Assembly (NCBI GenBank): GCA_946965045.2
Contig: OX337236.1
Coordinates: 1,860,001 to 1,924,000 of the forward strand
Reading direction: 5' to 3'
From: Epithemia pelagica
Lineage: Eukaryota; Protista; Bacillariophyta
Length of the DNA: 64,000 nucleotides
Below, piece after piece: positions 24,250 to 63,954 of this stretch. A model generated the notes under the pieces. It did not search any database, was not told where the DNA came from, and worked only from the letters and a program-made list of their open reading frames with translations. The position numbers and the translations under genes were made by a program. The stretch's first letter is position 1, and every line of letters begins with the position of its first letter.

Positions 24250-24898
24250 TAGGTCGAGACTACAACGTCTGATTCTGTCTAGGTCTTTAGGTGGCAGGGC
24301 TGCTTTCTATTAGTCCTTTTGTGAGCCGGATAGGCCAGACTTGAGTTGGCATATGTGGTAATGTGGATACTGTGCTGCCATCTAAAGTCATTTTGTGGTT
24401 TCTGGGGTTCTACGTCTTTTGTGTCGGGTCAGGTCTAGATGGCTTAGTACCTACCCCTGCTAGGGCACGGTGTTTTGTTTCTTCGTTAGTCCGTTGGGCG
24501 TGATTCTGACGTGGAACGACGTGGTGCAGCAATTTTGATTTAATGAAATGCTCTGACAACCTATGACCGTTCTTTGAGCATTTTTTTCTTCGGGGCTGAA
24601 TGTTTTTGAATTGGGGTGGGCCCGGCGATTTTGTCTTTCTTGTTGGGGGTTTTGGTGTTTGGTACTGAAATTTGACTTCTGGGCTAAAACTTTTTCTTCC
24701 AGTCTTTGATGTTTTTCCACCCCCAGACCCCCTTAGCCTGCCGGCTTCCGACACGTTCATTCTGAACTCAGTCGAACTACCTAGAGCATTTAGCATCCCC
24801 ATTTCCATTTTTCATTTTTCCACAATCTTTTCTCTTTTAAGATGTTATTCTCTTGTACTTGATACAGACCATCGTCCTCTTCGTAATCGCAACGGGTT

Positions 24899-27777
24899 TC
24901 AATGTTCGCGAGCAGACAATCCACGCCATAGTTCCGGCAACCACCTTTTACCGGAAACCCCAAAGAAGCTTCGAAGCTGTGGTCTTGCAAGACAAGTCCA
25001 TCCGCGCCTCTCTGATGGATTGACAGCAGGATGCCCACGGACAAGATAGGAATTGGGCAACGTGGCAGGTTGATTTGGAATCTCTTTCCCTTCCTTTAGT
25101 TGGTATCCATAGAGATCATATGTGACAACCCCTGACTTTACATCCTTTTGCCACAAACAAACAAAAACATCGTACTCTGGAAATTTAGCAAACTTCGGGT
25201 AGTAAATAGAAACTTTGGGAAAGTTCCCCTCCCAGTGATGGTTCGAACAGATTTCACCCAGTGCCTTCTGCAATTCTTGAAGATTCTTGACCATCGATAT
25301 GGTCCGAGTGGCGGGCAATGGATAATTATAAAAGAGACTTGTCGAAATCGTCTTCATTTCGAAACTCGGAGTTGGGATGCACGAGACATCTCCAAAATTA
25401 CCAGAAACATATCGCAACCAGAGAACAAGCAAAAACAAAGACTCCCATCCATCACCGCTTTCTTCTTTGCTCGTGCTCCAACTTTTCGCATCTTGTACGA
25501 CTTGACTTTGCGATAGTCCGAAACGACCTTGGATTGAATCTGCAAGATTTCCCAACAACTCCATCAAATAGCATGGTATCCAATAGCTTTTGCCATTGCC
25601 GTTATCCAAAAGTGCGTCAATATTCGTCCCTAGTGGCTCTCCGGAGAAGAAAGATCCCAAGACTCTTTGCAGCAAGTCGAAGTCCAATGTTGTACCACTA
25701 CAAGCCCTCTCTGTACGACGGGCGATCTGCGCTTTCTCAGCGAGCCCTTCAACCGTAAGAGTTGTCACCAGCAATGCCGGAATGAGGCCGTAATAGAGAG
25801 CCATTCGCGGCGTGAGATCGGTGATATTTAGATTTTGTCTTGCACCTGATAGATCCTGAATCAGCGGTAAGGTTTTAACTTCCATGTCACGAAAGGAAAG
25901 GGACGGCAATGCTTTTTCTGGATTTGTTGAGCTCAAATGGGAAGAAAACACAAAGTATCTTCCTCGTTGGGTGAGAAAGTTCTCCTTCAAGAAGAGTACA
26001 ATGTCTTTGTCCAATACCACGTTGTTCAACTCGTCAATCAACAATACGACTTGGTTGGTCCCAAGAAAAGAAGACACCTCGTCTGCCGTGATGCTGTATT
26101 TCTTGAAGGCTTTAAAATCATCACTTATCGCACCTGTCCTTAAACTCGCTGGACGAGCATCATACGCAATCCGCCGGCAAAGCATTTCAAGACTCGAGTC
26201 TCCTCTCAAAATCTCATAATCGCAATTGGAGAAGTCGTTGAATGAGACAAAGAGAGTTGGAATACACTGTTCGCGAAGTGCCTTTGCCAACTCGTAGAGT
26301 GCCCTCGTCTTCCCTCCCCTGGAGCAGCGAGCCAGGGAAGTGATTGGGACTCGGTACGATCCATCGGCTGCATCCTCCTTCAGGCACAAATCCGTCACCC
26401 TCCCCACGATGTCATCAAGCCATCCTTCTTGGCTTACGAACGGAGGTGTGATCGGTTCAAGATGAGGAATTTCCAAGAGGTTCATCCACTGTTGAGCCGG
26501 AATGCGGATTCTTTTTGGCGGACTTGCCTCTGGCACTGTCCATTGCACGCTTCTAAGTTTTGAGTTAAAATAGTAGGTCCGCCCCTCGCCGTCTACCATT
26601 TCTTGCCATCCTTCTGGAAGGGGCGGTGAATCTGCCGGTTGAGCTGGAATGCGGATTCTTTTTGGCGGATTAGCCTCAGGCACTGTCCATTGCACGCTTC
26701 CAAGTTTTGAGTTAAAATAGTAGGTCCGCCCCTCGCCGTCTACCATTTCTTGCCATCCTTCTGGAAGGGGCGGTGAATCTGCCGGTTGCTCCTGCGATGC
26801 ACTCATTCCTAGACATACTGTATCTTGATTGTGTTGTATAGTTGTTGTCGAGGTTGTTTCGCGTTTCGCTGCGTTGATGATGTTGGGACCAGCCCCGCTC
26901 TCACGCTTACGAAGGGATTTGTTGTCAGCATAGGCCTGCAAGGCGGGAATGTCGGCTTCCTCTTCGGCAATGAGTGCCACGGGGGCACCGACGGCACCAC
27001 TTTCTCCTTCTTGCGTAATAATGGCAGCCAAGAAACCGTCTTCAAAGGCTTCCACATCCATGTCCGCCTTATCGGACTCTACCACCATAATGGCTTCACC
27101 GGCCGAGATGGCATCACCCTCGGATTTCAACCAAGAAACCACCTTTCCTTCCTTCATTGTGGACGAAAGGGCGGGCATGTCAATCTGACTAAACGCACAG
27201 TCCGGTGCTTGGGGAACAAACAAACAAGAAAACTCAAGGTGAGGGCATGGCACACCACGAGACTACAACTGCCAACACACACACCAACCAACTATACATG
27301 GTGGGACCTACCTTCGGTGGAAGCCGCAGGGGGAGCCTCGGTCGACGCAGCCGGTGCGGCAGCAGCAGCCGCAGGCGCCGTTCCATCAAAACTGGCAATC
27401 ACCTCCTGTATGTCTGCCTCATTCTCCGCGATAAGGGCGACTGCTTCACCAACGGGAGCCATGGCCCCTTCTTCGACAATAATTTTGGCCAGATAGCCAT
27501 CTTCAAAGGCTTCGACATCCATATCGGCCTTGTCGGATTCCACGACCATGATGGCCTCACCGGCTTCAATCGAGTCACCTTCCGACTTGAGCCAACTAAC
27601 CACACGTCCTTCTTTCATGGTGGAGGACAAGGCCGGCATGGTGATGGTACTGCCTTCGGCAAACAAGTCCGTGAGGCTTCGGCCCACAGAAGGACGCCAT
27701 GGTTCTACAACACCAAAGGCATTCGAGGATCGGGCCAACAAGGCCACAAGGACACTGCAACTCAAGACGACCCTCAT
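24899..27777 (-). CDS. Chimeric gene (copy A): PDH E2 presequence + 2 lipoyl domains fused in frame to WW-WW, P-loop NTPase and PD-(D/E)xK nuclease; inherited intron about 27208..27311
   Basis: 27777..26928 copies PDH E2 13512..12663. The junction reads ALQAY|ADNKSLRK. Then 2x WW ([16 protein letters not shown]...QWTVP), Walker A RCSRGGKT, Walker B VLLIDE, nuclease motifs GDGWE, FPEYD, YQLK. Internal Met at 26806. Confidence 0.8.
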
Positions 27778-27997
27778 CTTTCAATTCCGAGACTCGCAAT
27801 GATGATGGATGGGATGTTGGTTGTCTCACAATCAATACAAAACTTGCGAGAGATCTCTCAAACAACTCGTCTGCCAAGTGATGTCGTCGCGTGTCTCATC
27901 AGTCGTCATCTCTCCCATCTTTCGCGAGACATCAACGTCACAAAATCAGTCCTTCTCCACTAAAAAAAATTTGAATCTATTATAACGCTGCCGCACG

Positions 27998-28169
27998 TGT
28001 CTTATTTTGCCTGTGGAAGCAAAATCCCACTATCGTAACAACATTCTTACCGATAACAAGAATTATACTACGTTCAAAGCAGAGACAAGAAAAGTAACCA
28101 TGTAAGCGGTAACATCAGCTTCTGTGGGTCTTGGATGTTCGTGATCGAGCTATCAGCCGGAATAAGACA
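27998..28169. repeat. LTR (left)
   Basis: 172 bp; two substitutions seen relative to 33858..34029. Confidence 0.92.
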
Positions 28170-31100
28170 GTCCCCGCAAGTCGATTGCCGACTTGGAATG
28201 AAGGCTGTGGCATGCGAGAAACGAGAGCTCCACAACATAGAAGCCCATTCAAGCCACAGTTCCAACCGGGCCATGTGGAAAATCATTGTAGACTGACATG
28301 AAATCATGTCACACTCATCCATTCTTGTCACTATTTGATCTCAGTTTTGCATTCGGGGCGGTCCTCCTTTTGTCTTTCTCTCCCCATGGTACGGCAGCTT
28401 TCTAGAGAGCCTCGTTGTAAGATGCGTCCAAGACCAATGGCAAGGTGTATGTATGCATGTGGAAAATCCCGCGTCCACAAAAATGCCAGACCGACTCAGG
28501 TCTCATTGTTACCCACCACAAGTGAGGAAAACCAACCCCCCGCGGCCACTCCAGGACATGGAACTACCATGCGATCAGGTTACACAACAACAACAGCAAT
28601 GCACGACATGGCCAAGAACCACGACAACAGGAGTTGGAATGGCAACAAGATGTACTGGAATGGATTCTGGAGATCTGTTATATCGTCTTGATCCAGAATC
28701 TCTGTCTCTTCGCCTTGTTCCAGATACCTCTTTCTTTGAACCCTGCTCCTTTTGATACCTGACAAGGCACCCCATGCCCAAATGAGCGAAACATGTGGTC
28801 CTGTCTCTGTCTATTATATTTGCCCCAGCACATAGATGCATACATGATCCTGCACGATTCGCTTGTCACTTCAACTTCGTTAGCTGGATTCGAGTTAATG
28901 TTCATATAACATGCGGTTCCGTGCATCCAGAAGGTATCCTCCCCACATTGTCTGCCCAAGTGATAAATGCTATCTAATTTCATTCTTTCCGACATGCCAA
29001 GGTGGGTGTCAACCAGATACACCATTTGTTGTCATCGCACTCCCTAACTATTCTGCAGCTGTGCTGTACGGGTAATTCCTTGTTCTCTCTACCACGTACC
29101 AAACTTTTCTGAATTTCCCCTCCACATCAGCAAGGAAGGAAGTATCTCACAACCTCTGCTAGCTGCACACCTGTTCATCTTCCATTATTGCGAGCAACCA
29201 TGTTTTGATAACTTGCCCCGTGCACCAAAGATCACACCAATTCAAGAGTCAGATATGTGTCTCAATGTCCCCGTCTTTCTTGGTCGATATAAGGAATGCA
29301 CCGTCCCCGTCTTCTTGCTTTCCAAACTATGAGGTCCCCGTCTTCTTGCTGCAATTCCCATTCCCATCCCAGGCTCAGGCTGTCATCATCTATCATTTTC
29401 CGAAAAACTCTTCCCGCGTCATAAGTCACAAGGTTTCTCCAATACCCCAATCATTCCCAATTCTGTGATTCAATTCTCCCAGCGTGGTGTCACATTTTCC
29501 ACAGATCCGATTCTTCTGCCTCACATTTATAGTATCTGTTGCCACCAAATCCATATCTGACCAACCTCTACTGTCTCCATTCACTCCTTAGCCGAGCATG
29601 TCCTTAACTGGCCATGCAGATCATTTCCACTTCATTTCAGGCCTTCTCGGATGGTTCCTGACAACAACCCCTTTCATGGCAAACCAGGAGAATCCTCCTC
29701 GGCAGTCACAAACAAAAACTCTGTCTGCATGCACAGAGAGCAGCCCATACATAGTCTGCAACCCGAGGTGTACCTCTCTCCAGTTTATGTTTGTCTGGGC
29801 AACCTCATCAGGAATCATGTTGTTTCCTCCAACACAATGCTCCTGTTTGTCCCTAATGATCCAGAGACTTTCCCTCCGATTTTTAGTGCATTTGTGCTTC
29901 CTCTGGTTTGCCGGCACCTGGCCAATAGTGTCATTTCTCTTGCACTTGCATCTTTTCCGACGACAATGGTATTTTGCGTTCTCCCGTGCACTTGCACATC
30001 CTCTCCCTACCGCAAATGTCACCACCTCCAGGATGCCTGCAGCCTCCTCGACCCCTCCTTTCTTGCACTACAGCATACATCACTCGGCATTTCCTGCACA
30101 ACAGCACTTCTCTCAATTAACACACCTGGTACGAGGACCAAATACCCAAGGAAATCCCAGAATGTTCTGACTGATGTCATTCCCTCAAGGAAGCCAACCA
30201 CATCATTGTCCCAACAAACAAGGGACATCACCTTTGCTATTGCAAATTGGCATCGGGAACGCAATCATATTTGGAAAAAAAAGGTCAGGAAGAATTCCCC
30301 GATGAACGTGACTCGGCACATGGCTTTGTATGGGCTGTTTGGTGCCAATTGCCCAATACCAAGCCTGGTCTTGAGAACAATCTCACCTCCTGCAAGGCCC
30401 TGCATCCCTCCTTGTGGAACGACCAACTTAAAAGTGTCTACTATACCAGTACCTTTCAGCTGCCCGTCAAGTTTTTCTCATGGCGGAGGAGCCTACCGCG
30501 TTCGATCACGGTTTCCCTGGAAGTCCTTTGCCATGGATGTCAACCAGTATCGGGATCCCATGATTCCACCCTACCCCCAAAGTTCCAAAGACTTGAGCTT
30601 TTTGTGGGCCGAAGGACCGCTCTGGTCCAAGCAGAGATTCAAGAGCCAACCACACGATGTTGTCGACTTTAATCTGGCCTATTCCATTACTCTCAAGAAG
30701 GGTGTGCCATCCGCCATTGGGCCACCCTGGTATTGTCCCCGTCCTCTGACAATGGGAAGCCAGAGCAAGCATGGGAGGAGGAATGTAAGCAACCAGGCCT
30801 CCCCTTTTTTTTAGGAGATCGTGGGTTTTAGGAGATCGTGGGTATGCCTTTCACGTGTTTGGTTCCCCTCCCGATGTATCTGGCCCTGCCCATCTTTCCC
30901 TTCCAGGGTCCCCGCCTTGCGATCACCTTCATAAAAAACATGTCACAGCAAGTGACATCGTCTCATAGTCTTCCGCTTCCTTTTGTATTTCATCCAAATG
31001 ACTTTGAATTTTCATCTTGGTAGCAGGACGCGAATCCGATCCCCACTTCTCGCGGAACCCACTTTTCGTCCCCTTGTTCAGTGAGATGTTCCATGCCCAT

Positions 31101-33857
31101 AGCTAACAACTCCTTGTTTATTCATATGTTCCAAGCCCATAGCCAACAATCCATCACTTCTGCAATACGTATTGTCCCTTTTCAGACCATTGCGTCTCTT
31201 GATCCATGCTCCAATTTTCTCCACGCGTACCACAGTGACTCCATATCTTCCGTGGTGATGAGGGGGGCTTCGAACTCCAATTCAGTCATTGATGAACTGT
31301 CATTGGATGTACGAGACGGGAGAGTATCCCATGACCATCCTGCTCCATCCATTGTCAACCCCCCAGGAATGTACAACTTCTCTTGAGGAAGATTCCTCTC
31401 CACGATTACAGGCCCGCGGGGCAAAGACACAGTTCCCTGTTTCAAACAAATCAACCCTATGCCAGATAGGAGCAATTCGCCATCATAATCCAAGAGCACC
31501 CTGACCCGAAAAGATCCTCCGATGGTATGGCCATTTGCCATATCCTGGACAATAGATATGTCTTGTCTCAGTCATCAGGATCCCACGCCAGCAATTCTGA
31601 TTTGTGTAATCTGGCCGCAAAACTAAATTGTGATGCAGAATCGCCATTCCAATTCTCAGTACTGCAGACACGAGTGGCCTCATAAGCACATGCTTTGTCT
31701 GGATCCGCCGTCCTCATACTCATCAACTTCCGGCGTCTCTTTCATGACCACCTCTCCATATTCCTCATTTGGTGCTACGATTCATGTCTGTCCCCGCTGT
31801 TCCTCTTCTGCTTCTACATCCTCCCATTATCCTGGTCCACTTCCATTACTAGATATATCCGGTTTGGCTTTTCTCTTTCTGGTAGTTGGTCAAAAAGATC
31901 CATCGTATCCACTTCTTTTGACACTCTTTAGCGTCTTCACCTGAACCTCCGTTTATAGCACAACTCTGCACGAGACTCCGCAGAAACAGTGTGATGCCCA
32001 CAAGAAGAAACTCCGCAGAAACAGTGTGATGCCCACAAGAAGAAACTGCCTCAAAGAAGACACTGCCTCATCCGTAGCCCACAAGAAGAAACTACCTCAA
32101 AGAAGACACTGCCTCATCCATAGCAATCACTTTAGATGTCGTTGATTATCGGACTCCTCCAGTAGGCCCACTCCTCCCGTGGACCCAGAGCTGTTTGTCC
32201 CCGTCCTCCAACCATCGCTCTTGCGGAGCTATGGGAGGAGGATTCTTCTACTCCACGGGATCCTCATCGACAACCCAACAGTTAGTTCTTCGTCAATATC
32301 TTGCATACCAAATGCGGAGCAGTCTCCAGCCAATTAAGTGATGTCCCAATAACCTATTAGAATATACTTTGTCATGGCATGGAACAGCAATATTTCTGAA
32401 TATAGTCGAATGACGTGACCATTCGATGAACAGACGACGTACATTCTCGACGCGACTGTAAGGTTTCGGGACACAAAGAATACTTCCCCCTGTTTTGGTT
32501 CTGGTTGTGAAAAGAGACAACACCGTGGCTGTGCTTGGGCAGGTCATCTTCCTGTTGATGGTCTTCTCGTTGTTTGTGCCACTCCACGCCTGGTCCTTCC
32601 ACAAGCTGCTCAGTCGCATGACGGACCTCTCCGACAAGACCAACCGTTGCCAGTCTCATTGGTAAGGATACAGACGAAATTGTCACTGCCAAATCGGACA
32701 ATGACGACGACGGAATGGAATCGAGTCTTTCCACCGACACCTCAGGGGCCTTGCATGGTGCCCAATAATTCTGCGATTCCACGAGGCTGATACACGCTTG
32801 GCAGCCCCAATGCTTCATCCATGTATAACGCAACGTTCGGATTCCAATTACCAGTCCCAGTTGATACGAACATGACTCAGACTCCCTTTATCCAGTCGAT
32901 ACGAACATGACTCAGACTCCCTTTATGAAATTTCCTCGTCAGTTAACTTTCCAAGAAGGCCCATTGGTGTATTGCTCCAATGCGGGAGCATGCTCCATTG
33001 TGCCGACCACACGTCATTTTCATTATTTCCGACACTGCACTCTGGTGTTAGAGGCAAAATTTACACATCCGACTTCCTACGAATAGGTCCGTTTCACGAG
33101 AACTTCAATTCCTAACAAATGAGGTTATTCCTTTTGTCGATACATTGCTTCCTCAATGCCTGATCCGGTGACACTCGTACCTTGAGTGCCACCATCCCTC
33201 CCGGATGTATCCGTATCCGGTGACACCTGTACCTCGGGTGCCACCATCATTCCTAGATGCACCACGCGGTGCACCCATCCCAACAGCCATTCCCTCCACA
33301 ACTATAACCCGTTGCAGACCCCGTTCCGGTATCAGATGAACCTTCCGGGTGATTTTCCCCCAGTGAAACACCGGTCTCACCTCGTTGGTGATATCCAAGG
33401 CTGTGGGATCTCCGCTTCGACTCCCTCCGCTACCTGTGGGTACTAAAACTGGCAGCAGCTTCTGCTTCACGTTTGTGTTTCCACTCCTACTCCCTTTTTG
33501 GACTTCTGATTGCTCCCTCTTTCGATTTCCACTTTCACTGGGTTCCTTTCCTACTTCTGCATCCTTCATGGGTACTTGTGTCTCACCCTTGGCTTCCACA
33601 GCTTCCGCTCTCACAGCTTCTGTAACTCCATCCATTTCCACAACTCCCGTAATTCCCATTACTTCCAGTTTATATCGTCAGTCATTGGTCTCGATGACAA
33701 ATAACCATTTCTGTTTTGTCGTTTTCAACCACATCGATTGCTTTCCTTGTGCTTCGTCTCCATCAGCTAGCTCTCTCTGAAACGCTTCCCCATCGTTTAT
33801 TTCTTGTCTCTTTCTGCCTCGAAGGCCAAAATGTAGCTTCTTCTGGGTCTGATAAAC

Positions 33858-52829: not shown

Positions 52830-54756
52830 GCGCTTTTTCTTTCTACCAGTTCGGTGTGTATTCTTCGATGCGACACGCTGCGCATCATTGAGACGATGGC
52901 CTTTTTTAGCAACTGGACCACGATCGTTCTCCTGATAGACGAGGTGTTGTACGTCACCAACTCGTAGTTTGTCGTCATGGTTGTATGGGCCAAGGCAAGC
53001 TTGATCAATAATTTGTGTGTCCCGCATGCTGGGAACAGCTCCTCCCCAGTCGTTATTCATGTTCAGAGCATTTAACCCATCGGATTGTTGTTTTCCATGA
53101 CCACTGCTTTGGTCGAACAAAAAGACAAAGTCATGGGCGGGGAACATGACCACGAGGCAATCGACAATATCCTCCAACTGCAAGGCCATGTATTCATAAT
53201 TCCAATATCCCTCTTTATCTGCTCCGTATTCAAAAAAGCGAGTGAACGGTTGGGCATTGGTAATTGGAGTCTTGGCAGTGTGACCATTGAGGTTCACTGC
53301 AGCCTCGGTAGAGACGTATTTGTTGTTTGTCGCATGTAGACGGAGTTCATTAATCCGAAATAGACTCGCAGCAAGCAACGGGTTTCCGTTCATAAGGAAG
53401 CCCCATGATCGGCTTACAAAAGTGCTGATCATCATCCCATGTCCATCATCCTTTGGCAGCATTTTAGTTGCGCCATCTTTAGTGTACCATGCCTTAGACG
53501 AGAAGGAAAACTGCTTGTAGATCGATTCCACATTTGGAAGTGCCTCCACGTTGGAAATGGCCCTTTCAAGGGTTTCTATCCATCGCTCAAGATTTCGTTT
53601 TGACGATCCTGGAGAATCGCATTTGCCGGCAAAGAGCCTACGGTTCCTTGGCTCATCAAAATAGGCGCTTTCCATTTGTTGCGATAGACCTTGGATCATC
53701 TCACTCTCGAAAACTGAAAAACCAATCGGCAAACTCTGTGGATGGTCATGGCCGATTTCGTCTGTGGCCAATTCAGGATGTTGGATTGCTCCAACAAGCA
53801 CCTGATTTGTGTTGTCGTGAGGTGGTGACGTTTGCATTTCGGTAGGGCTGTCTCCAATTTGTGGCGGTTGACCATGTTGCTGCGTTGCAGTGCTCTTGAT
53901 TGCTGGTGGAGTTGAAGTGTTTCTTGCTTGCTTGGATGTATTTAGCGTGCCTTCACGCAACCCTGGTGACTCTTCGTTCCTTCGCTTCGTTGGCTTCGCT
54001 CGTCCCGACCGCCGAATCACATTCTCGGCTGCAGCCTCCAGCCATTCTTGATGATCGTCCAACATCACTGGCAGGGTTGTTGTGTCTTTAGAGATGTAAT
54101 AGAATGTGAAGCGTTCCCTTTTGATTGTATCTCTGTAGCGGTAGAAGCCATACTTGTTTGGCTTTTCAACATCATCGAAACACATTGCAATGCTTTTTTC
54201 TCTTCGGAAAGCACGGTTCATTTCCAGCACAGACAATCCTGGCAACCAAGTGTTCATATATCCTACAAGCTCGACATCTCGGAACCACTTGTTGCAGAAT
54301 CCAAACACGGTGGGTGAGCACTGCTTCCGAAACAGTTCAACAATCTCGTTCCCAGAAAAACTTCGTTCCATCCGAGACTGTGCTGCGTGAGGTGAGTCCG
54401 ATGATCGTGTCATTGTGGATGATGTCGATGCGTTGAACTGTTGCCCCATTGGGGGTGGTTCAAGTAAACCCTAAAGCATCCGGATGCAGCTCGGCAACAG
54501 TTCAACGGGTCTGGGAGGCCCTCCACCATGGTCGTTAGACAACAACCGTTTTTTCATCATTTTGGACGGAATTCCAGCGTTCGGAAGCTGTCACGCAACA
54601 CACTAAAACACATAAAAATATATCATAAGACTCTGGGAAGTCTCGAGTCGGACACTTTCATTCACTAGTAAGGCCGAACGCTATTAAGGATTATACTCTA
54701 TGGTACTAAATCTACGAGGGGTCTACGTCAGGAACATACTCCCTGAACTCAGCTTG
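52830..54756 (-). mobile_element. Defective relative of the 7-kb transposon (internally deleted, 3'-truncated transposase remnant, ORF 52716..54449)
   Basis: Shares the N-terminal NKW..D.E...W.P.LS..MNR block, LPKDDGHG, YWNYEYMALQLED and FLFDQSSGH with 20722..23871. Lacks the first D region and the HCEL..E motif. Right end TGAACTCAGCTTG|TA resembles the TIR end TGAACCAGCTTG|TA. Confidence 0.8.
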
Positions 54757-54758
54757 TA

Positions 54759-55372
54759 TATTATCGGTGGGCGGACGCAGAGATGCGGAGCATGCGCGGC
54801 GCGCGCGCTCAAAATCCTCGACCGTCACGGAAACGCGTATGGGTCGCCTTAAGTATGGAATCGAAAAGGAAGGAGAAGAGCAACTTTGGGAAGACGATGG
54901 CAAGCAAAGGGGTGGTTTCCGGACGCAATAATCATTCCCTTTATAGACTACTTATCATTTAGAGTATCCATTGGATATTTCACCTGTTGTTCTGTTGGCC
55001 CTACGAGCTCATGTGGGAAAGACACGTCAATTTCCATGCTCTATGGAAACACAACCTCCACCATGAGGATGGAAAAGACTCCTAAAGAGCAAGGCAGCAA
55101 CAGTTGGCCGACTATATGTACTTGTCTACAATACTAGTGCCTAGATAGACTCTGTCATCGCTTTTGTCCATGACAAATCCATCATCGGAAGACTTCGACT
55201 GTTCGACGCATTGAGTGTGTGGTGTGTGGGCGCGTGATGTTGCTTCCAACCATGCTCCACCCGCACTCTTCCTCCGCATGTAAATTTTGCGAAGGAAAGC
55301 TCTACATCCGGGTTGGTTTGGCCTTTCTCCGCCCATATCATGCTTCGCACATGCTCCGCGCGCCCGATAATA
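54759..55372. mobile_element. MITE-like 614-bp insert, unit 1
   Basis: Ends TATTATCGG...CCGATAATA flanked by TA on both sides, with inverted subterminal GCGGAGCATG motifs. No long ORF. Confidence 0.5.
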
Positions 55373-55553
55373 TACCCCCTTAGCCTGCCGGCTTACCCGA
55401 CACGTTCATTCTGAACTCAGTCGAACTACCTACCTAGAGCAGTTAGCATCCCCATTTCAATTTTTCATTTTTCCACAAGATCTTTTCTCTTTTAAGATGT
55501 TATTCTCTTGTACTTGATACAGACCATCGTCCTCTTCGTAATCGCAACGGGTG

Positions 55554-58268
55554 TCAATGTTCGCGAGCAGACAATTCACGCCATTGTTCCGGCAACCACC
55601 TTTTACCGGAAACCCCAAAGAAGCTTCGAAGCTGTGGTCTTGCAAGACAAGTCCATCCGCGCCTCTCTGATGGATTGACAGCAGGATGCCCACGGACAAG
55701 ATAGGAATTGGGCAACGTGGCAGGTTGATTTGGAATCTCTTTCCCTTCCTTTAGTTGGTATCCATAGAGATCATATGTGACAACCCCTGACTTTACATCC
55801 TTTTGCCACAAACAAACAAAAACATCGTACTCTGGAAATTTAGCAAACTTCGGGTAGTAAATAGAAACTTTGGGAAAGTTCCCCTCCCAGTGATGGTTCG
55901 AACAGATTTCACCCAGTGCCTTCTGCAATTCTTCAAGATTCTTGACCATCGATATGGTCCGAGTGGCGGGCAATGGATAATTATAAAAGAGACTTGTCGA
56001 AATCGTCTTCATTTCGAAACTCACAGTTGGGATGCACGAGACATCTCCAAAATTACCAGAAACATATCGCAACCAGAGAACAAGCAAAAACAAAGACTCC
56101 CATCCATCACCGCTTTCTTCTTTGCTCGTGCTCCAACTTTTCGCATCTTGTACGACTTGACTTTGCGATAGTCCGAAACGACCTTGGATTGAATCTGCAA
56201 GATTTCCCAACAACTCCATCAAATAGCATGGTATCCAATAGCTTTTGCCATTGCCGTTATCCAAAAGTGCGTCAATATTCGTCCCTAGTGGCTCTCCTGA
56301 GAAGAAAGATCCCAAGACTCTTTGCAGCAAGTCGAAGTCCAATGTTGTACCACTACAAGCCCTCTCTGTACGACGGGCGATCTGCGCTTTCTCAGCGAGC
56401 CCTTCAACCGTAAGAGTTGTCACCAGCAATGCCGGAATGAGGCCGTAATAGAGAGCCATTCGCGGCGTGAGATCGGTGATACTTAGATTTTGTCTTGCAC
56501 CTGATAGATCCTGAATCAGCGGTAAGGTTTTAACTTCCATGTCACGAAAGGAAAGGGACGGCAATGCTTTTTCTGGATTTGTTGAGCTCAAATGGGAAGA
56601 AAACACATAGTATCTTCCTCGTTGGGTGAGAAAGTTCTCCTTCAAGAAAAGTACAATGTCTTTGTCCAACTCCACGTTGTTCAACTCGTCAATCAACAAT
56701 ACGACTTGGTTGGTCCCAAGAAAAGAAGACACCTCGTCTGCCGTGATGCTGTATTTCTTGAAGGCTTTAAAATCATCACTTATCGCACCTGTCCTTAAAC
56801 TCGCTGGACGAGCATCAAACGCAATCCGCCGGCAAAGCATTTCAAGACTCGAGTCTCCTCTCAAAATCTCATAATCGCAATTGGAGAAGTCGTTGAATGA
56901 GACAAAGAGAGTTGGAATACACTGTTCGCGAAGTGCCTTTGCCAACTCGTAGAGTGCCCTCGTCTTCCCTCCCCTGGAGCAGCGAGCCAGGGAAGTGATT
57001 GGGACTCGGTACGATCCATCGGCTGCATCCTCCTTCAGGCACAAATCCGTCACCCTCCCCACGATGTCATCAAGCCATCCTTCTTGGCTTACGAACGGAG
57101 GTGTGATCGGTTCAAGATGAGGAATTTCCAAGAGGTTCATCCACTGTTGAGCCGGAATGCGGATTCTTTTTGGCGGACTTGCCTCTGGCACTGTCCATTG
57201 CACGCTTCTAAGTTTTGAGTTAAAATAGTAGGTCCGCCCCTCGCCGTCTACCATTTCTTGCCATCCTTCTGGAAGGGGCGGTGAATCTGCCGGTTGAGCT
57301 GGAATGCGGATTCTTTTTGGCGGATTAGCCTCAGGCACTGTCCATTGCACGCTTCCAAGTTTTGAGTTAAAATAGTAGGTCCGCCCCTCGCCGTCTACCA
57401 TTTCTTGCCATCCTTCTGGAAGGGGCGGTGAATCTGCCGGTTGCTCCTGCGATGCACTCATTCCTAGACATACTGTATCTTGATTGTGTTGTATAGTTGT
57501 TGTCGAGGTTGTTGTCGCTTCATGTACAATCATTTCGTCAGCTCCAACAGAAGCTGCACCCAGATCCACGTCTCCGGTCATAACGTCGATCTTCCGCCTC
57601 TTGCTAAGTCCCACATGTGATTTTCGTTTCTTGCGACCCGCCATGCCGCGGTGTTGTTGGTGATGCCACACTGGAACACGAGAAATGCTCGGAACTCCCA
57701 ACAAGAGGGGATTGGAGACTGCCATGGTTTGTGAAAAAGAACCACAAATTGTGTTTGGATGGTGACGGATGGTGGATCCACCCAGGGGCGAGGAGGAGAG
57801 CAGGATGGATGATGAACAAGACGACGACAACGCCCGCACCGTGGTTCCGGCAAGACATGTTCCAAGTGTCCCAGCCGGGTTGCAGGATGCCACTATTCCA
57901 ATCGTTTTGTTGGTCTTGGAATGGATCAATGGCAATGAAATCCTGTGGCGACACCAAACGCCAATCCCACGGGTGGCGGCGGCGGTGGTGGTGGCCATCA
58001 TCATGGTGATGATGATGATGGTGACTGCCTTGCCAGGAACAGAGGATGTCTCGAATGGTCTGGACCGACCATCATGCCGCGCGGGTCCAACAAAAGATAC
58101 CATGGCTGCCTGTCCGCTGTCCGCCTGACTTATTCCGCGACCGAAGAATTCTCTTCCGCGACCGACTACCACTACCCACTCTACCACCACCACGACACCC
58201 ACCCACGACACTAATGTTACTACTCCTATACTCCTACTCCCATGACCCAGAAAATGTTCTTGATCCAT
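55554..58268 (-). CDS. Chimeric gene (copy C): N-terminus of the 51218..52579 gene fused in frame to the WW-WW/NTPase/nuclease module
   Basis: Junction at 57620 reads RGMAGRKKRK|SHVGLSKRRK. 904-aa open frame; internal Met at 57461. Confidence 0.8.
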   Translation of the reverse strand: MDQEHFLGHGSRSIGVVTLVSWVGVVVVVEWVVVVGRGREFFGRGISQADSGQAAMVSFVGPARHDGRSRPFETSSVPGKAVTIIIITMMMATTTAAATRGIGVWCRHRISLPLIHSKTNKTIGIVASCNPAGTLGTCLAGTTVRALSSSCSSSILLSSSPLGGSTIRHHPNTICGSFSQTMAVSNPLLLGVPSISRVPVWHHQQHRGMAGRKKRKSHVGLSKRRKIDVMTGDVDLGAASVGADEMIVHEATTTSTTTIQHNQDTVCLGMSASQEQPADSPPLPEGWQEMVDGEGRTYYFNSKLGSVQWTVPEANPPKRIRIPAQPADSPPLPEGWQEMVDGEGRTYYFNSKLRSVQWTVPEASPPKRIRIPAQQWMNLLEIPHLEPITPPFVSQEGWLDDIVGRVTDLCLKEDAADGSYRVPITSLARCSRGGKTRALYELAKALREQCIPTLFVSFNDFSNCDYEILRGDSSLEMLCRRIAFDARPASLRTGAISDDFKAFKKYSITADEVSSFLGTNQVVLLIDELNNVELDKDIVLFLKENFLTQRGRYYVFSSHLSSTNPEKALPSLSFRDMEVKTLPLIQDLSGARQNLSITDLTPRMALYYGLIPALLVTTLTVEGLAEKAQIARRTERACSGTTLDFDLLQRVLGSFFSGEPLGTNIDALLDNGNGKSYWIPCYLMELLGNLADSIQGRFGLSQSQVVQDAKSWSTSKEESGDGWESLFLLVLWLRYVSGNFGDVSCIPTVSFEMKTISTSLFYNYPLPATRTISMVKNLEELQKALGEICSNHHWEGNFPKVSIYYPKFAKFPEYDVFVCLWQKDVKSGVVTYDLYGYQLKEGKEIPNQPATLPNSYLVRGHPAVNPSERRGWTCLARPQLRSFFGVSGKRWLPEQWRELSAREH

Positions 58269-58518
58269 ACGATTGTTCTAGACAAAATAGTGGAACAAGA
58301 TTTTCTAGCACAGCGATCTACTTCTCCACATTTGCTAGAGGAAATGATGGAGGACATTTCATACTACTCTGCCCAAGGGCACCGGGACAAACGAGAAACG
58401 AACATCAACGTTTGGGTGTGTCGCGGTCAACCATGGAAAACCCGCACCAGTCTAGTTCTCTCGAGTCATATCCCACAAGCCCACAAGGAACAGGAGTGTA
58501 TATGTGTGCCTGTGTGTT

Positions 58519-60445
58519 GCGCTTTGTCTTTCTACCAGTTCGGTGTGTATTCTTCGATGCGACACGCTGCGCATCATTGAGACGATGGCCTTTTTTAGCA
58601 ACTGGACCACGATCGTTCTCCTGATAGACGAGGTGTTGTACGTCACCAACTTGTAGTTTGTCGTCATGGTTGTATGGGCCAAGGCAAGCTTGATCAATAA
58701 TTTGTGTGTCCCGCATGCTGGGAACAGCTCCTCCCCAGTCGTTATTCATGTTCAGAGCATTTAACCCATCGGATTGTTGTTTTCCATGACCACTGCTTTG
58801 GTCGAACAAAAAGACAAAGTCATGGGCGGGGAACATGACCACGAGGCAATCGACAATATCCTCCAACTGCAAGGCCATGTATTCATAATTCCAATATCCC
58901 TCTTTATCTGCTCCGTATTCAAAAAAGCGAGTGAACGGTTGGGCATTGGTAATTGGAGTCTTGGCAGTGTGACCATTGAGGTTCACTGCAGCCTCGGTAG
59001 AGACGTATTTGTTGTTTGTCGCATGAAGACGGAGTTCATCAATCCGAAATAGACTCGCAGCAAGCAACGGGTTTCCGTTCATAAGGAAGCCCCATGATCG
59101 GCTTACAAAAGTGCTGATCATCATCCCATGTCCATCATCCTTTGGCAGCATTTTAGTTGCGCCATCTTTAGTGTACCATGCCTTAGACGAGAAGGAAAAC
59201 TGCTTGTAGATCGATTCCACATTCGGAAGTGCCTCCACGTTGGAAATGGCCCTTTCAAGGGTTTCTATCCATCGCTCAAGATTTCGTTTTGACGATCCTG
59301 GAGAATCGCATTTGCCGGCAAAGAGCCTACGGTTCCTTGGCTCATCAAAATAGGCGCTTTCCATTTGTTGCGATAGACCTTGGATCATCTCACTCTCGAA
59401 AACTGAAAAACCAATCGGCAAACTCTGTGGATGGTCATGGCCGATTTCGTCTGTGGCCAATTCAGGATGTTGGATTGCTCCAACAAGCACCTGATTTGTG
59501 TTGTCGTGAGGTGGTGACGTTTGCATTTCGGTAGGGCTGTCTCCAATTTGTGGCGGTTGACCATGTTGCTGCGTTGCAGTGCTCTTGATTGCTGGTGGAG
59601 TTGAAGTGTTTCTTGCTTGCTTGGATGTATTTAGCGTGCCTTCACGCAACCCTGGTGACTCTTCGTTCCTTCGCTTCGTTGGCTTCGCTCGTCCCGACCG
59701 CCGAATCACATTCTCGGCTGCAGCCTCCAGCCATTCTTGATGATCGTCCAACATCACTGGCAGGGTTGTTGTGTCTTTAGAGATGTAATAGAATGTGAAG
59801 CGTTCCCTTTTGATCGTATCTCTGTAGCGGTAGAAGCCATACTTGTTTGGCTTTTCAACATCATCGAAACACATTGCAATGCTTTTTTCTCTTCGGAAAG
59901 CACGGTTCATTTCCAGCACAGACAATCCTGGCAACCAAGTGTTCATATATCCTACAAGCTCGACATCTCGGAACCACTTGTTGCAGAATCCAAACACGGT
60001 GGGTGAGCACTGCTTCCGAAACAGTTCAACAATCTCGTTCCCAGAAAAACTTCGTTCCATCCGAGACTGTGCTGCGTGAGGTGAGTCCGATGATCGTGTC
60101 ATTGTGGATGATGTCGATGCGTTGAACTGTTGCCCCATTGGGGGTGGTTCAAGTAAACCCTAAAGCATCCGGATGCAGCTCGGCAACAGTTCAACGGGTC
60201 TGGGAGGCCCTCCACCATGGTCGTTAGACAACAACCGTTTTTTCATCATTTTGGACGGAATTCCAGCGTTCGGAAGCTGTCACGCAACACACTAAAACAC
60301 ATAAAAATATATCATAAGACTCTGGGAAGTCTCGAGTCGGACACTTTCATTCACTAGTAAGGCCGAACGCTATTAAGGATTATACTCTATGGTACTAAAT
60401 CTACGAGGGGTCTACGTCAGGAACATACTCCCTGAACTCAGCTTG
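58519..60445 (-). mobile_element. Second copy of the defective transposase remnant (ORF 58405..60138)
   Basis: Tandem-unit copy with a few substitutions (N>D, R>Q, K>T). Confidence 0.8.
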
Positions 60446-60447
60446 TA

Positions 60448-61061
60448 TATTATCGGTGGGCGGACGCAGAGATGCGGAGCATGCGCGGCGCGCGCGCTCA
60501 AAATCCTCGACCGTCACGGAAACGCGTATGGGTCGCCTTAAGTATGGAATCGAAAAGGAAGGAGAAGAGCAACTTTGGGAAGACGATGGCAAGCAAAGGG
60601 GTGGTTTCCGGACGCAATAATCATTCCCTTTATAGACTACTTATCATTTAGAGTATCCATTGGATATTTCACCTGTTGTTCTGTTGGCCCTACGAGCTCA
60701 TGTGGGAAAGACACGTCAATTTCCATGCTCTATGGAAACACAACCTCCACCATGAGGATGGAAAAGACTCCTAAAGAGCAAGGCAGCAACAGTTGGCCGA
60801 CTATATGTACTTGTCTACAATACTAGTGCCTAGATAGACTCTGTCATCGCTTTTGTCCATGACAAATCCATCATCGGAAGACTTCGACTGTTCGACGCAT
60901 TGAGTGTGTGGTGTGTGGGCGCGTGATGTTGCTTCCAACCATGCTCCACCCGCACTCTTCCTCCGCATGTAAATTTTGCGAAGGAAAGCTCTACATCCGG
61001 GTTGGTTTGGCCTTTCTCCGCCCATATCATGCTTCGCACATGCTCCGCGCGCCCGATAATA
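60448..61061. mobile_element. MITE-like insert, unit 2
   Basis: Copy of 54759..55372. Confidence 0.5.
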
Positions 61062-61242
61062 TACCCCCTTAGCCTGCCGGCTTACCCGACACGTTCATTC
61101 TGAACTCAGTCGAACTACCTACCTAGAGCAGTTAGCATCCCCATTTCAATTTTTCATTTTTCCACAAGATCTTTTCTCTTTTAAGATGTTATTCTCTTGT
61201 ACTTGATACAGACCATCGTCCACTTCGTAATCGCAACGGGTG

Positions 61243-63954
61243 TCAATGTTCGCGAGCAGACAATTCACGCCATTGTTCCGGCAACCACCTTTTACCGGAA
61301 ACCCCAAAGAAGCTTCGAAGCTGTGGTCTTGCAAGACAAGTCCATCCGCGCCTCTCTGATGGATTGACAGCAGGATGCCCACGGACAAGATAGGAATTGG
61401 GCAACGTGGCAGGTTGATTTGGAATCTCTTTCCCTTCCTTTAGTTGGTATCCATAGAGATCATATGTGACAACCCCTGACTTTACATCCTTTTGCCACAA
61501 ACAAACAAAAACATCGTACTCTGGAAATTTAGCAAACTTCGGGTAGTAAATAGAAACTTTGGGAAAGTTCCCCTCCCAGTGATGGTTCGAACAGATTTCA
61601 CCCAGTGCCTTCTGCAATTCTTCAAGATTCTTGACCATCGATATGGTCCGAGTGGCGGGCAATGGATAATTATAAAAGAGACTTGTCGAAATCGTCTTCA
61701 TTTCGAAACTCACAGTTGGGATGCACGAGACATCTCCAAAATTACCAGAAACATATCGCAACCAGAGAACAAGCAAAAACAAAGACTCCCATCCATCACC
61801 GCTTTCTTCTTTGCTCGTGCTCCAACTTTTCGCATCTTGTACGACTTGACTTTGCGATAGTCCGAAACGACCTTGGATTGAATCTGCAAGATTTCCCAAC
61901 AACTCCATCAAATAGCATGGTATCCAATAGCTTTTGCCATTGCCGTTATCCAAAAGTGCGTCAATATTCGTCCCTAGTGGCTCTCCGGAGAAGAAAGATC
62001 CCAAGACTCTTTGCAGCAAGTCGAAGTCCAATGTTGTACCACTACAAGCCCTCTCTGTACGACGGGCGATCTGCGCTTTCTCAGCGAGCCCTTCAACCGT
62101 AAGAGTTGTCACCAGCAATGCCGGAATGAGGCCGTAATAGAGAGCCATTCGCGGCGTGAGATCGGTGATACTTAGATTTTGTCTTGCACCTGATAGATCC
62201 TGAATCAGCGGTAAGGTTTTAACTTCCATGTCACGAAAGGAAAGGGACGGCAATGCTTTTTCTGGATTTGTTGAGCTCAAATGGGAAGAAAACACATAGT
62301 ATCTTCCTCGTTGGGTGAGAAAGTTCTCCTTCAAGAAAAGTACAATGTCTTTGTCCAACTCCACGTTGTTCAACTCGTCAATCAACAATACGACTTGGTT
62401 GGTCCCAAGAAAAGAAGACACCTCGTCTGCCGTGATGCTGTATTTCTTGAAGGCTTTAAAATCATCACTTATCGCACCTGTCCTTAAACTCGCTGGACGA
62501 GCATCAAACGCAATCCGCCGGCAAAGCATTTCAAGACTCGAGTCTCCTCTCAAAATCTCATAATCGCAATTGGAGAAGTCGTTGAATGAGACAAAGAGAG
62601 TTGGAATACACTGTTCGCGAAGTGCCTTTGCCAACTCGTAGAGTGCCCTCGTCTTCCCTCCCCTGGAGCAGCGAGCCAGGGAAGTGATTGGGACTCGGTA
62701 CGATCCATCGGCTGCATCCTCCTTCAGGCACAAATCCGTCACCCTCCCCACGATGTCATCAAGCCATCCTTCTTGGCTTACGAACGGAGGTGTGATCGGT
62801 TCAAGATGAGGAATTTCCAAGAGGTTCATCCACTGTTGAGCCGGAATGCGGATTCTTTTTGGCGGACTTGCCTCTGGCACTGTCCATTGCACGCTTCTAA
62901 GTTTTGAGTTAAAATAGTAGGTCCGCCCCTCGCCGTCTACCATTTCTTGCCATCCTTCTGGAAGGGGCGGTGAATCTGCCGGTTGAGCTGGAATGCGGAT
63001 TCTTTTTGGCGGATTAGCCTCAGGCACTGTCCATTGCACGCTTCCAAGTTTTGAGTTAAAATAGTAGGTCCGCCCCTCGCCGTCTACCATTTCTTGCCAT
63101 CCTTCTGGAAGGGGCGGTGAATCTGCCGGTTGCTCCTGCGATGCACTCATTCCTAGACATACTGTATCTTGATTGTGTTGTATAGTTGTTGTCGAGGTTG
63201 TTGTCGCTTCATGTACAATCATTTCGTCAGCTCCAACAGAAGCTGCACCCAGATCCACGTCTCCGGTCATAACGTCGATCTTCCGCCTCTTGCTAAGTCC
63301 CACATGTGATTTTCGTTTCTTGCGACCCGCCATGCCGCGGTGTTGTTGGTGATGCCACACTGGAACACGAGAAATGCTCGGAACTCCCAACAAGAGGGGA
63401 TTGGAGACTGCCATGGTTTGTGAAAAAGAACCACAAATTGTGTTTGGATGGTGACGGATGGTGGATCCACCCAGGGGCGAGGAGGAGAGCAGGATGGATG
63501 ATGAACAAGACGACGACAACGCCCGCACCGTGGTTCCGGCAAGACATGTTCCAAGTGTCCCAGCCGGGTTGCAGGATGCCACTATTCCAATCGTTTTGTT
63601 GGTCTTGGAATGGATCAATGGCAATGAAATCCTGTGGCGACACCAAACGCCAATCCCACGGGTGGCGGCGGCGGTGGTGGTGGCCATCATCATGGTGATG
63701 ATGATGATGGTGACTGCCTTGCCAGGAACAGAGGATGTCTCGAATGGTCTGGACCGACCATCATGCCGCGCGGAGATACCATGGCTGATGGCTGCCTGTC
63801 CGCTGTCCGCCTGACTTATTCCGCGACCGAAGAATTCTCTTCCGCGACCGACTACCACTACCCACTCTACCACCACCACGACACCCACCCACGACACTAA
63901 TGTTACTACTCCTATACTCCTACTCCCATGACCCAGAAAATGTTCTTGATCCAT
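61243..63954 (-). CDS. Chimeric gene (copy D), same fusion as copy C
   Basis: 903-aa open frame, junction at 63309, internal Met at 63150. Confidence 0.8.
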   Translation of the reverse strand: MDQEHFLGHGSRSIGVVTLVSWVGVVVVVEWVVVVGRGREFFGRGISQADSGQAAISHGISARHDGRSRPFETSSVPGKAVTIIIITMMMATTTAAATRGIGVWCRHRISLPLIHSKTNKTIGIVASCNPAGTLGTCLAGTTVRALSSSCSSSILLSSSPLGGSTIRHHPNTICGSFSQTMAVSNPLLLGVPSISRVPVWHHQQHRGMAGRKKRKSHVGLSKRRKIDVMTGDVDLGAASVGADEMIVHEATTTSTTTIQHNQDTVCLGMSASQEQPADSPPLPEGWQEMVDGEGRTYYFNSKLGSVQWTVPEANPPKRIRIPAQPADSPPLPEGWQEMVDGEGRTYYFNSKLRSVQWTVPEASPPKRIRIPAQQWMNLLEIPHLEPITPPFVSQEGWLDDIVGRVTDLCLKEDAADGSYRVPITSLARCSRGGKTRALYELAKALREQCIPTLFVSFNDFSNCDYEILRGDSSLEMLCRRIAFDARPASLRTGAISDDFKAFKKYSITADEVSSFLGTNQVVLLIDELNNVELDKDIVLFLKENFLTQRGRYYVFSSHLSSTNPEKALPSLSFRDMEVKTLPLIQDLSGARQNLSITDLTPRMALYYGLIPALLVTTLTVEGLAEKAQIARRTERACSGTTLDFDLLQRVLGSFFSGEPLGTNIDALLDNGNGKSYWIPCYLMELLGNLADSIQGRFGLSQSQVVQDAKSWSTSKEESGDGWESLFLLVLWLRYVSGNFGDVSCIPTVSFEMKTISTSLFYNYPLPATRTISMVKNLEELQKALGEICSNHHWEGNFPKVSIYYPKFAKFPEYDVFVCLWQKDVKSGVVTYDLYGYQLKEGKEIPNQPATLPNSYLVRGHPAVNPSERRGWTCLARPQLRSFFGVSGKRWLPEQWRELSAREH

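Follow-up and report, generated by a model that had tools for sequence, protein, structure and literature searches.

Among proteins of the Crinkler/RHS (CR) class, a nucleoside triphosphatase (NTPase) followed by a helix-turn-helix (HTH) and a restriction endonuclease (REase) domain is the commonest C-terminal architecture, according to PMC5289972, which summarizes Zhang et al. 2016; the same source also reports CR proteins with diverse headers in free-living eukaryotes and a link between the NTPase–REase pair and transposons in prokaryotes. In the Crinkler effectors (CRNs) of oomycetes, N- and C-terminal parts have been exchanged, and the family has expanded by duplication together with recombination of fragments (PMC3726527; PMC5289972). 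Bacterial polymorphic toxins (Rhs, CDI) combine a constant part with exchangeable parts in local arrays (PMC3482391). Here we describe a gene that resembles these systems, hereafter the module, in a 64,000-nucleotide stretch of the genome of the diatom Epithemia pelagica (contig OX337236.1, positions 1,860,001 to 1,924,000). This whole stretch is called the window, and positions are numbered from its first letter. The window contains four copies of the module, which arose by two independent local tandem segmental duplications, and the same kind of break has occurred at least seven times within 250 bp of the 5' edge of the module, at different loci and at different ages.

Tandem segmental duplications that end in two genes are a classical source, in Drosophila and elsewhere, of junction fusions in which the promoter and 5' end of one gene are placed on the body of another. 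The duplications described here differ from such chimeras in that they recur many times at the same edge of the same family, which a random model does not predict. They resemble the oomycete CRNs in forming a modular family that grows by tandem duplication, with a preferred boundary for N- and C-terminal exchange and with head-to-tail arrays. Unlike in the CRNs, however, the junctions are non-homologous, with 1–2 bp of microhomology, and the donor and parent genes still lie beside the product; what has been captured at the N-terminus includes parts of unrelated host genes instead of further CRN headers, and neither a signal peptide nor an LxLFLAK motif was seen here. As in the polymorphic toxins, one header cassette precedes two bodies, one NTPase–REase and one HNH-like, at a further locus of the same assembly (L006). 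Bacterial exchange, however, proceeds by homologous recombination with orphan cassettes and immunity genes (PMC3482391), whereas the module lies in a eukaryotic nuclear genome and no immunity partner was identified for it. With the CR proteins of the NTPase–(HTH)–REase type, the module shares the order of a P-loop NTPase before a putative REase-like domain, a winged-helix-like linker in the structural model, variable headers on a constant body and lineage-specific expansion. It differs from them in that the window copies have two WW domains and N-terminal pieces taken from housekeeping neighbours, in that its nuclease motif has Q for the usual acidic residue (QxK), and in that its host is a free-living photosynthetic diatom.

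The copy and duplication structure was established by self-BLAST of the 64-kb window, a repeat search and a listing of open reading frames (ORFs). The first two of these showed that a 2,145-bp segment occurs four times on the minus strand, as copy A (24727–26862; ATG at 26806, stop at 24899), copy B (41116–43249; ATG at 43193, stop at 41286), copy C (55374–57518; ATG at 57462, stop at 55554) and copy D (61063–63207; ATG at 63151, stop at 61243). The part of the ORF common to all four begins at MSASQ, encodes 635 amino acids without an intron and is intact in every copy. At its 5' end, two 147-bp tandem repeats encode one WW domain each (26491–26788, minus strand, in copy A, and likewise in B, C and D). 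Overall identity among the four copies is 98.6–99.7%: it amounts to 99.2% between A and B (over 2,264 bp) and to 98.6–98.9% between the A/B pair and the C/D pair, and C differs from D at only 1 of the 1,878 coding nucleotides compared. The hallmarks of tandem duplication are present at both loci, namely head-to-tail units, 99.2–99.7% identity between units and microhomology of 2 bp and 1 bp at the novel junctions, with an additional deletion junction (J3) at the A/B locus.

On the plus strand, the A/B locus comprises, in order, a PDH-E2 gene, a FabA-like gene, a SET/Rubisco-LSMT-like gene, a Tc1/mariner-type element, module A and junction J1, followed by a second copy of 12663–16736, junction J3, module B and unique DNA with a CDC37 gene and a homeobox gene. 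Self-BLAST matched 12663–13698 to 26928–27963, 13679–16736 to 37981–41056, and 24668–26929 to 41057–43316 (99.2% identity). The duplicated unit therefore extended from inside the E2 gene (12663) to 123 bp upstream of the module (26929). At J1 (26928/26929), the 5' flank of module A is joined to the copy of 12663 onward, a position within the PDH-E2 (dihydrolipoamide acyltransferase) gene (11477–13512, minus strand), which encodes lipoyl, E3-binding and catalytic domains and the 5' part of which has been copied in front of the module. The sequences of A and B are common up to GGGATTTGTTGTCAGC, after which A runs into the E2 copy. J1 lies 123 bp (41 codons) upstream of the MSASQ ATG, shows 2 bp (GC) of microhomology and is in frame; upstream of the ATG, the frame of copy A stays open as far as 27253, crossing J1 and entering the second lipoyl domain of E2, and Pfam Biotin_lipoyl was matched at residues 23–95 in the parent E2 and in the chimera alike. 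The duplicated E2 piece (26928–27963, minus strand, a copy of 12663–13698) contains the lipoyl domain, an upstream lipoyl-encoding ORF and the promoter side. The rest of the duplicated unit (37981–41056, minus strand, a copy of 13679–16736) contains the FabA-like gene and most of the SET/Rubisco-LSMT-like gene (14972–17011 in the first unit), truncated at its 5' end. At J3 (41056/41057), 231 bp past the stop of copy B, 16736 abuts 24668, so that 7.9 kb of the first unit are deleted. Either the second unit later lost these 7.9 kb, or J1 and J3 were generated in one template-switching event. Upstream of copy B, the non-duplicated context is preserved and runs collinearly with a second contig. 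An in-frame ORF upstream of copy B crosses a microsatellite of TGY codons encoding cysteine runs (43330–43560), a region that is a better candidate for an untranslated leader than for a genuine header.

The second duplication forms a tandem array (51931–64000, minus strand) of 5,689-bp units that are 99.65% identical, with at least 3 kb more past the end of the window. In plus-strand order, each unit comprises the 5' part of ORF 51218–52579, a transposase-like ORF and the module. Where the two were compared, another contig, ctg1231l, matches the window at 100% identity; it shows a third unit and begins inside the module of that unit. At the array junction (57619/57620, and again at 63308/63309), the module flank is joined to 51931 onward; the join is in frame and falls 8 codons past the MAGRKKRK start of the parent ORF (51218–52579, minus strand), whose promoter side and first codons, encoding a basic N-terminus, head copies C and D. 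The junction lies 157 bp (52 codons) upstream of the module ATG and shows 1 bp (A) of microhomology. The frames of both copies are open through it into the N-terminus of the parent ORF (upstream to 58268 in copy C), and copy D has the same chimeric N-terminus as C. When minus-strand genes are tandemly duplicated, the junction is expected to set the promoter and 5' part of the gene on the left before the gene on the right, and both loci follow this pattern. These results bear out an earlier note on this DNA, which had described four near-identical open copies on the minus strand, novel junctions at the 5' end of the module within about 50 codons upstream of MSASQ, divergence of A and B beyond a shared terminal sequence (confirmed by alignment), only 1–2 bp of microhomology, and the placing of a host promoter and N-terminus before the module, which holds for both window junctions.

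We then compared the copies across the whole assembly (ENA ERZ21939226), with breakpoints defined as the positions, relative to the ATG, at which homology between copies ends. Five further copies with at least 98.5% identity are present on other contigs, and a 94%-identical paralogue is present at two loci (L010 and L013). Seven breakpoints fall within about 250 bp, from −157 to +94, with at least five upstream contexts. In addition to the C/D array junction (−157) and J1 (−123, seen in copy A and in M747 on contig ctg1259l), breakpoints were found at −115 in M708 (also on ctg1259l), the upstream DNA of which is unrelated and encodes a presequence-like N-terminus; at −80 between L010 and L013, which have the 94% paralogue and everything downstream in common; at −73, where the homology of this paralogue with the A/B type starts; at −56, between the C/D and A/B types; and at +94 in M709, where the break lies inside the first WW repeat and joins the module in frame, with 1 bp of microhomology, to a Crinkler-type header. 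The upstream contexts of the near-identical copies are all open in frame for at least 73 codons, and all three junctions that join known reading frames (E2, ORF 51218–52579 and the Crinkler header) are in frame. A tabulation of 5' junctions that might have revealed one fixed N-terminus instead gave further N-termini, with breakpoints in the same 250-bp zone. The WW repeat has contracted to one unit in two paralogues. On the 3' side, homology ends 40, 111, 118, 151, 172, 210 and 231 bp past the stop, as ragged as on the 5' side, owing to J3, to deletions and to two insertions, one of 870 bp and a larger one with the mariner-type element inside it. The C/D and L006 copies have in common 207 bp of the upstream region of a neighbouring gene beyond the module. 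When breakpoints were modelled as uniformly distributed over units of 5.7 and 14.3 kb, the probability that two breaks would fall within about 160 bp of the start codon was approximately 1e-3, so chance is unlikely to account for the clustering of the two window junctions.

Two of the other loci show a different arrangement, with one module between direct repeats of host DNA. At L006 (contig ctg1146l), these repeats are 1,018 bp long and 100% identical, and the second of them heads a different body of 473 amino acids with an HNH-like motif (L006:13427–14848). The identical 1,018-bp promoter and header in M709 and in the HNH-like gene thus represent one header cassette before two bodies in tandem. 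By our own reading of the sequence, the L006 header has a VIAMAP motif near the junction that is reminiscent of the HVLVxxP motif of oomycete CRNs. At L010 (contig ctg1336l), the direct repeats on either side of the module are 707 bp long and 92.6% identical, and their source is a chlorophyll-binding protein gene, of which they represent the 3' part. Judged by identity, the duplicates range in age from 92.6% at L010 through about 99.2% for A/B and 99.65% for C/D to 100% at L006. An exact look-up of the genes neighbouring L006 and L010 for empty sites returned only the same contigs. A broken relative in another diatom, on a metagenome contig and 88% identical, is solitary and without flanking repeats. 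Approximately 2 kb upstream of the L010 paralogue locus, a 1,025-amino-acid gene has undergone a 4.1-kb tandem duplication (L010:1–7801; 99.97% identical) with no module inside; therefore, young tandem duplications also arise without the module in this genome.

In the module protein, two WW domains are followed by a P-loop NTPase and then by a C-terminal domain in which an E..D..QxK motif is conserved. Pfam detected nothing beyond the two WW domains, with the lipoyl domain added in copy A, and searches with the whole protein and with 37 C-terminal domains returned WW, lipoyl and unrelated accessory domains only, with Mrr_cat unmatched; a sequence profile search of the PDB with the module protein gave no match. 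Among 5.8 billion proteins, we found 108 homologues by sequence and 141 by profile, all unnamed, from diatoms (Attheya, Fragilariopsis, Amphiprora, Nitzschia, Bacillariaceae), Amoeboaphelidium and many metagenomes. In an alignment of 38 sequences, the Walker A residues R-G-G-K-T are invariant and the Walker B residues D-E-L-N nearly so. An AlphaFold (AF2) model built from the homologue alignment had a pLDDT of 89.7 and a pTM of 0.88, and Foldseek with the N-terminal two thirds of the model retrieved Apaf-1, CED-4, Avs3, ORC/Cdc6 and MuB with E values of 7e-6 to 1e-4. By this model, the NTPase part is a STAND/AAA+-like P-loop NTPase with intact Walker motifs, and the helices and beta hairpin at model residues 277–310 probably form a winged helix.

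The C-terminal 200 residues, modelled separately (pLDDT 89.7), gave nothing significant in a Foldseek search of the PDB (best E value, 0.18). In a VIA search, which is independent of Foldseek, nearly all of the best 50 chains were PD-(D/E)xK nucleases, including Can2, Cdn1, Card1, Hjc, NgoMIV, Bse634I, McrC, FokI and VRR-NUC, but at Z scores of 3.0–5.2, which lie within the noise range of the tool. Conservation is high at E22 (36/37 sequences), D113 (36/37), Q136 (37/37) and K138 (33/37). In the model, E22 lies on the first long helix, D113 just before the second core strand and Q136 and K138 on the third strand, as in the canonical core, and the FPEYD and YQLK residues therefore fall where a PD-(D/E)xK active site would be. 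The expectation of the earlier note that these residues would map onto such a site was thus correct as to their positions, but the support for the fold itself is suggestive of a PD-(D/E)xK-like nuclease and not decisive. By analogy with CR proteins, the module protein is probably an NTP-regulated nuclease that acts in some genetic or inter-organismal conflict.

Assignment of the module to the CR class, as the earlier note had proposed, is supported by its relatives and by its architecture. P0156 of Nitzschia sp. Nitz4 (profile E value, 3e-138) carries the Pfam Crinkler domain PF20147 at 29.6 bits, against a cut-off of 24.6. M709, the paralogue on ctg1146l of the same assembly, has a header that is 31% identical to the header region of P0156 (pairwise E value, 8e-10). 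The Crinkler-type header of P0156 occurs twice in tandem (residues 54–164 and 170–263), and both units can be aligned with the header of M709. In the ESM Atlas, the closest clusters bearing a name were 'Crinkler family protein' clusters and prokaryotic clusters of AAA-ATPases with Mrr_cat. The CR header is present on these relatives, and the four window copies are without it; the CR feature of one body with different headers is seen in nine copies of at least 98.5% identity with five upstream contexts, in addition to the 94% paralogue. Because of the PF20147 match, the homologous M709 header, the ESM Atlas clusters and the predicted NTPase–REase architecture, we place the module in the CR class as an NTPase with a putative REase-like domain. 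The prokaryotic proteins that combine AAA_22/ATPase_2 with Mrr_cat are similar in having an AAA-type ATPase and an Mrr-like restriction endonuclease domain, and they are the nearest prokaryotic neighbours by ESM Atlas features and structure; these are only language-model and fold leads (0.84–0.86), with no sequence match to Pfam Mrr_cat.

We also asked whether the junctions could be artefacts of assembly, produced by collapsed repeats or mis-joined reads. One contig starts inside the array, and the Logan unitigs that represent the sequencing runs end at repeat borders, so that no listed piece bridges J1 and no listed read-derived piece spans the whole stretch. However, J1 with its chimeric lipoyl–module gene is also present on the separately assembled contig ctg1259l, amid different transposon insertions: Copia elements lie there in place of the 10-kb insertion and of the mariner-type element found in the window. 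Furthermore, a 60-base query consisting only of J1-spanning 31-mers found both sampled words in all four runs, which represent three samples. The loose ends of unitigs at J1 match alternative contexts, namely the parent E2 gene, the C/D type and M709. In run X2, word depth was approximately 700–744 for the module, 280–330 for the duplicated E2 piece and 94 for the flank of the mariner-type element; module depth was therefore about 2.3–2.5 times that of the E2 piece and several times that of single-copy flanks. These depths fit about nine, four and one copies as assembled, although the tool warns that depths are not copy numbers. The C/D junction rests on three units in one long-read contig. 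An artefact, which the earlier note had named as a possible objection, is thus largely refuted for J1, and we assign next to no probability to it as an explanation of the locus.

The two versions of the A/B locus differ in other respects. On ctg1259l (135 kb, including L003, L004 and L005), J1 and J3 occur in a different order and flank one module, and the R-proximal unit has a full-length SET-like gene. This block is inverted relative to an E2-to-module unit, the module of which (M708) has another upstream context. The arrangement could be a haplotype with an inversion, a product of unequal crossover or a mis-join. A Copia-type retrotransposon with identical 236-bp long terminal repeats lies in the duplicated E2 piece of ctg1259l (L003:2914–9322), and there is none at that place in the window; thus, transposon insertions differ between the two versions. 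Around window positions 24300–24700, in the DNA that separates the mariner-type element from module A, contig depth was absent in runs X1 and X4 (samples S1 and S3) and present in X2 and X3 (S2), which may reflect an insertion polymorphism between samples or a filtering hole.

With moderate confidence, we favour the reading that duplications by end joining or template switching have recurred in a fast-evolving CR family, with breaks concentrated at the 5' edge of the module. In this reading, the four copies belong to a young and still expanding subfamily of a diatom CR-type gene. A single novel junction with 1–2 bp of microhomology is the signature of end joining or replicative template switching and not of transposition or homologous crossover, and we infer that the junctions were made by one of the former two processes. 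The first event duplicated the unit 12663–26929, later reshaped by deletion and transposon insertions, and the second a 5,689-bp unit now present at least three times. Each duplication started inside a neighbouring gene and ended just upstream of the module ATG, so that every non-terminal copy gained the promoter and first codons of the neighbour in frame. The chimeras may be expressed from the captured promoters as fusion proteins. With regard to the clustering, our guess is that the 5' region, beside the two 147-bp WW repeats and the transcription start, may be fragile and often broken, and that new N-termini and promoters may in addition be retained by selection; some property of the module itself is a further candidate cause. 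The dN/dS values among copies (0.5–1.0) and the integrity of all nine ORFs are consistent with selection for new N-termini and promoters.

Several points weigh against this reading. Ordinary random tandem duplication does not explain seven breakpoints in 250 bp, and the repeat–module–repeat arrangements at L006 and L010 need two novel junctions each, so they are not simple tandem duplications. Moreover, copies A–D keep the ATG of the module itself, so the upstream frames may not be translated. The nuclease character of the protein is likewise vulnerable, given that the Z scores behind the predicted fold are weak (at most 5.2) and that Foldseek returned no significant match.

Of the two broader proposals in the earlier note, the description of the locus as header shuffling caught in the act in an alga is supported by the parent genes, the in-frame junctions and the differing N-termini. 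Nothing tested here supported the proposal that the duplications are driven by the module or by an element in which it travels: the module has no terminal inverted repeats, poly(A) or fixed ends, its 3' flank is as rearranged as its 5' flank, the 88% relative is solitary, and J3 lies past the stop of copy B rather than at the 5' end. A driving role therefore stays conjectural. We found no inverted repeats flanking the module, no A-run at any module 3' boundary and no recombinase travelling with it. As a DNA transposon with terminal inverted repeats, the module was rejected for lack of such repeats and because its ends vary from −157 to +94 on the 5' side and from +40 to +231 on the 3' side. 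As a retrocopy, it was rejected given the missing A-run and the 207 bp of the neighbour's upstream region that C/D and L006 carry beyond the module. No Rep/helicase was present among the called genes of the loci examined, although no search aimed at Helitron ends was made. Helitron-associated gene capture has been reported for CRNs of P. infestans.

The module might instead be a mobile cassette, in which a body of about 2 kb, roughly the transcription unit, is repeatedly copied to new sites by a non-homologous replicative process that duplicates 1–6 kb of target, so that the body lies between direct repeats of host DNA and behind a local N-terminus; microhomology-mediated template switching or capture at staggered breaks would be candidate processes. 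This would account for the repeat–module–repeat structures at L006 and L010, for near-identical bodies at unrelated loci whose homology ends within about 250 bp on the 5' side and about 200 bp on the 3' side, for the sharing of body and downstream DNA by L010 and L013, which differ from 80 bp upstream of the A-type ATG position, and for junctions with 1–2 bp of microhomology. However, the body has ragged ends, no empty site is available for comparison, and nothing accounts for this body as the preferred donor; for the A/B locus, duplication of a unit with the module already inside it is the simpler account. The 207 bp of neighbouring DNA in the C/D and L006 copies likewise indicates that large DNA segments were copied and not a defined cassette. 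We consider a cassette of this kind unlikely for the loci described here. We are slightly more doubtful still of its general form, in which CR bodies would be termini-less mobile cassettes that insert, preferentially in frame behind host promoters and N-termini, with kilobase-scale target duplication, possibly aided by breaks from their own nuclease. If true, such a cassette would be a eukaryotic counterpart of the cassette exchange of polymorphic toxins, making new fusion genes genome-wide. A related proposal, that of a self-amplifying selfish gene, holds that the NTPase–nuclease of the module or a carrying element cuts beside its own 5' end and thereby drives duplication and header capture. 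The clustering of breakpoints beside the gene, the conserved nuclease-like motif, the resemblance of the NTPase to transposition ATPases such as MuB (among many other AAA+/STAND proteins) and the transposon linkage of the NTPase–REase pair in prokaryotes (PMC5289972) all point in this direction. Against it stand the absence of conserved cleavage-site-like termini or inverted repeats, the equally rearranged 3' flank and dN/dS values near 1 in the youngest copies, which do not suggest strong selection for activity. We found nothing that speaks specifically for self-cutting, do not think that cutting by the module's own nuclease is the reason for the clustering, and regard the proposal as a whole as improbable. 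No CR protein is known to us as a cis-acting nuclease whose cuts are confined to the neighbourhood of its own gene.

Gene conversion could in principle keep old paralogues near-identical, with the sharp homology ends marking the ends of conversion tracts, as the raggedness of these ends, their differences between copy pairs and the proximity of the copies on one chromosome might suggest. We find this very improbable, given that J1 and the C/D junction have kilobases of 99.2–99.7% identical non-module DNA on their far sides, and that, between the flanks of the A/B and C/D types, BLAST found no residual diverged homology past the boundaries. Moreover, the 94% paralogue has A/B-type upstream sequence to −73, which makes the C/D-type break at −56 a derived one, and the L006 junction lies inside coding sequence, with the first WW repeat removed. 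Aberrant transposition of the neighbouring Tc1/mariner-type elements is another conceivable source of the duplications, since a complete element lies 437 bp beyond the common 3' flank of module A and a shortened relative of its large ORF is present in every C/D unit. Neither window junction contains element termini, however, and no copy of the 18-nt terminal repeat was found other than the two that bound the complete element; other module loci are without such an ORF within 10 kb, and the element is missing from this site in the second contig, in which J1 is nevertheless present. We therefore give this explanation only a very slight chance.

The remaining features of the window belong mainly to mobile DNA. 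The Tc1/mariner-type element (17279–24251), which lies between the SET-like gene and module A, is bounded by perfect terminal inverted repeats of 18 nt and by a TA duplication; it is not at the corresponding site in ctg1259l. Its large ORF (20722–23922) encodes 1,066 amino acids. The 577-amino-acid ORF of each array unit (52716–54449, minus strand, and again 58405–60138) is a shortened relative of this ORF, with 46% identity over 238 amino acids and with residues 248–563 and 796–1066 missing. Pfam matched neither ORF, and the ESM Atlas gave only a weak DDE_3 lead. In a direct comparison, the 577-amino-acid ORF and the SET-like gene beside A/B were unrelated. The second unit of the A/B duplication is split by a 10-kb insertion (27964–37980) with a 20-bp target duplication and strongly skewed base composition. 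An A-run stands at the left end of this insertion, and near 34 kb its GC skew changes sign, from about −0.21 to +0.21. A 172-bp direct repeat occurs within it (27998–28169 and 33858–34029), and its large ORFs had no Pfam match.

A full-text search of the literature on diatoms and Crinklers gave oomycete and parasite work, none of it, as judged by titles and abstracts, on the CR genes of diatoms themselves. Against this background, the features that appear to be new are the free-living diatom host, the youth of the events, whose parents still lie next to their products, the use of N-termini from housekeeping genes, and the crowding of non-homologous breakpoints along a single edge of the body. 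Shuffling of CR headers and toxin bodies is known, but the underlying DNA events have usually been inferred from old, diverged genes. The events described here are young (0–1% divergence), and the parent gene, the junction and the product are adjacent. They show that header replacement is possible through tandem duplication at the level of microhomology, with recruitment of housekeeping N-termini that include the lipoyl domain of an organelle enzyme. With seven breakpoints in 250 bp, the idea that a conflict gene of a free-living alga is a hot spot of rearrangement becomes concrete and testable, and the finding bears both on how diatoms generate new genes and on the roles of CR proteins outside pathogens.

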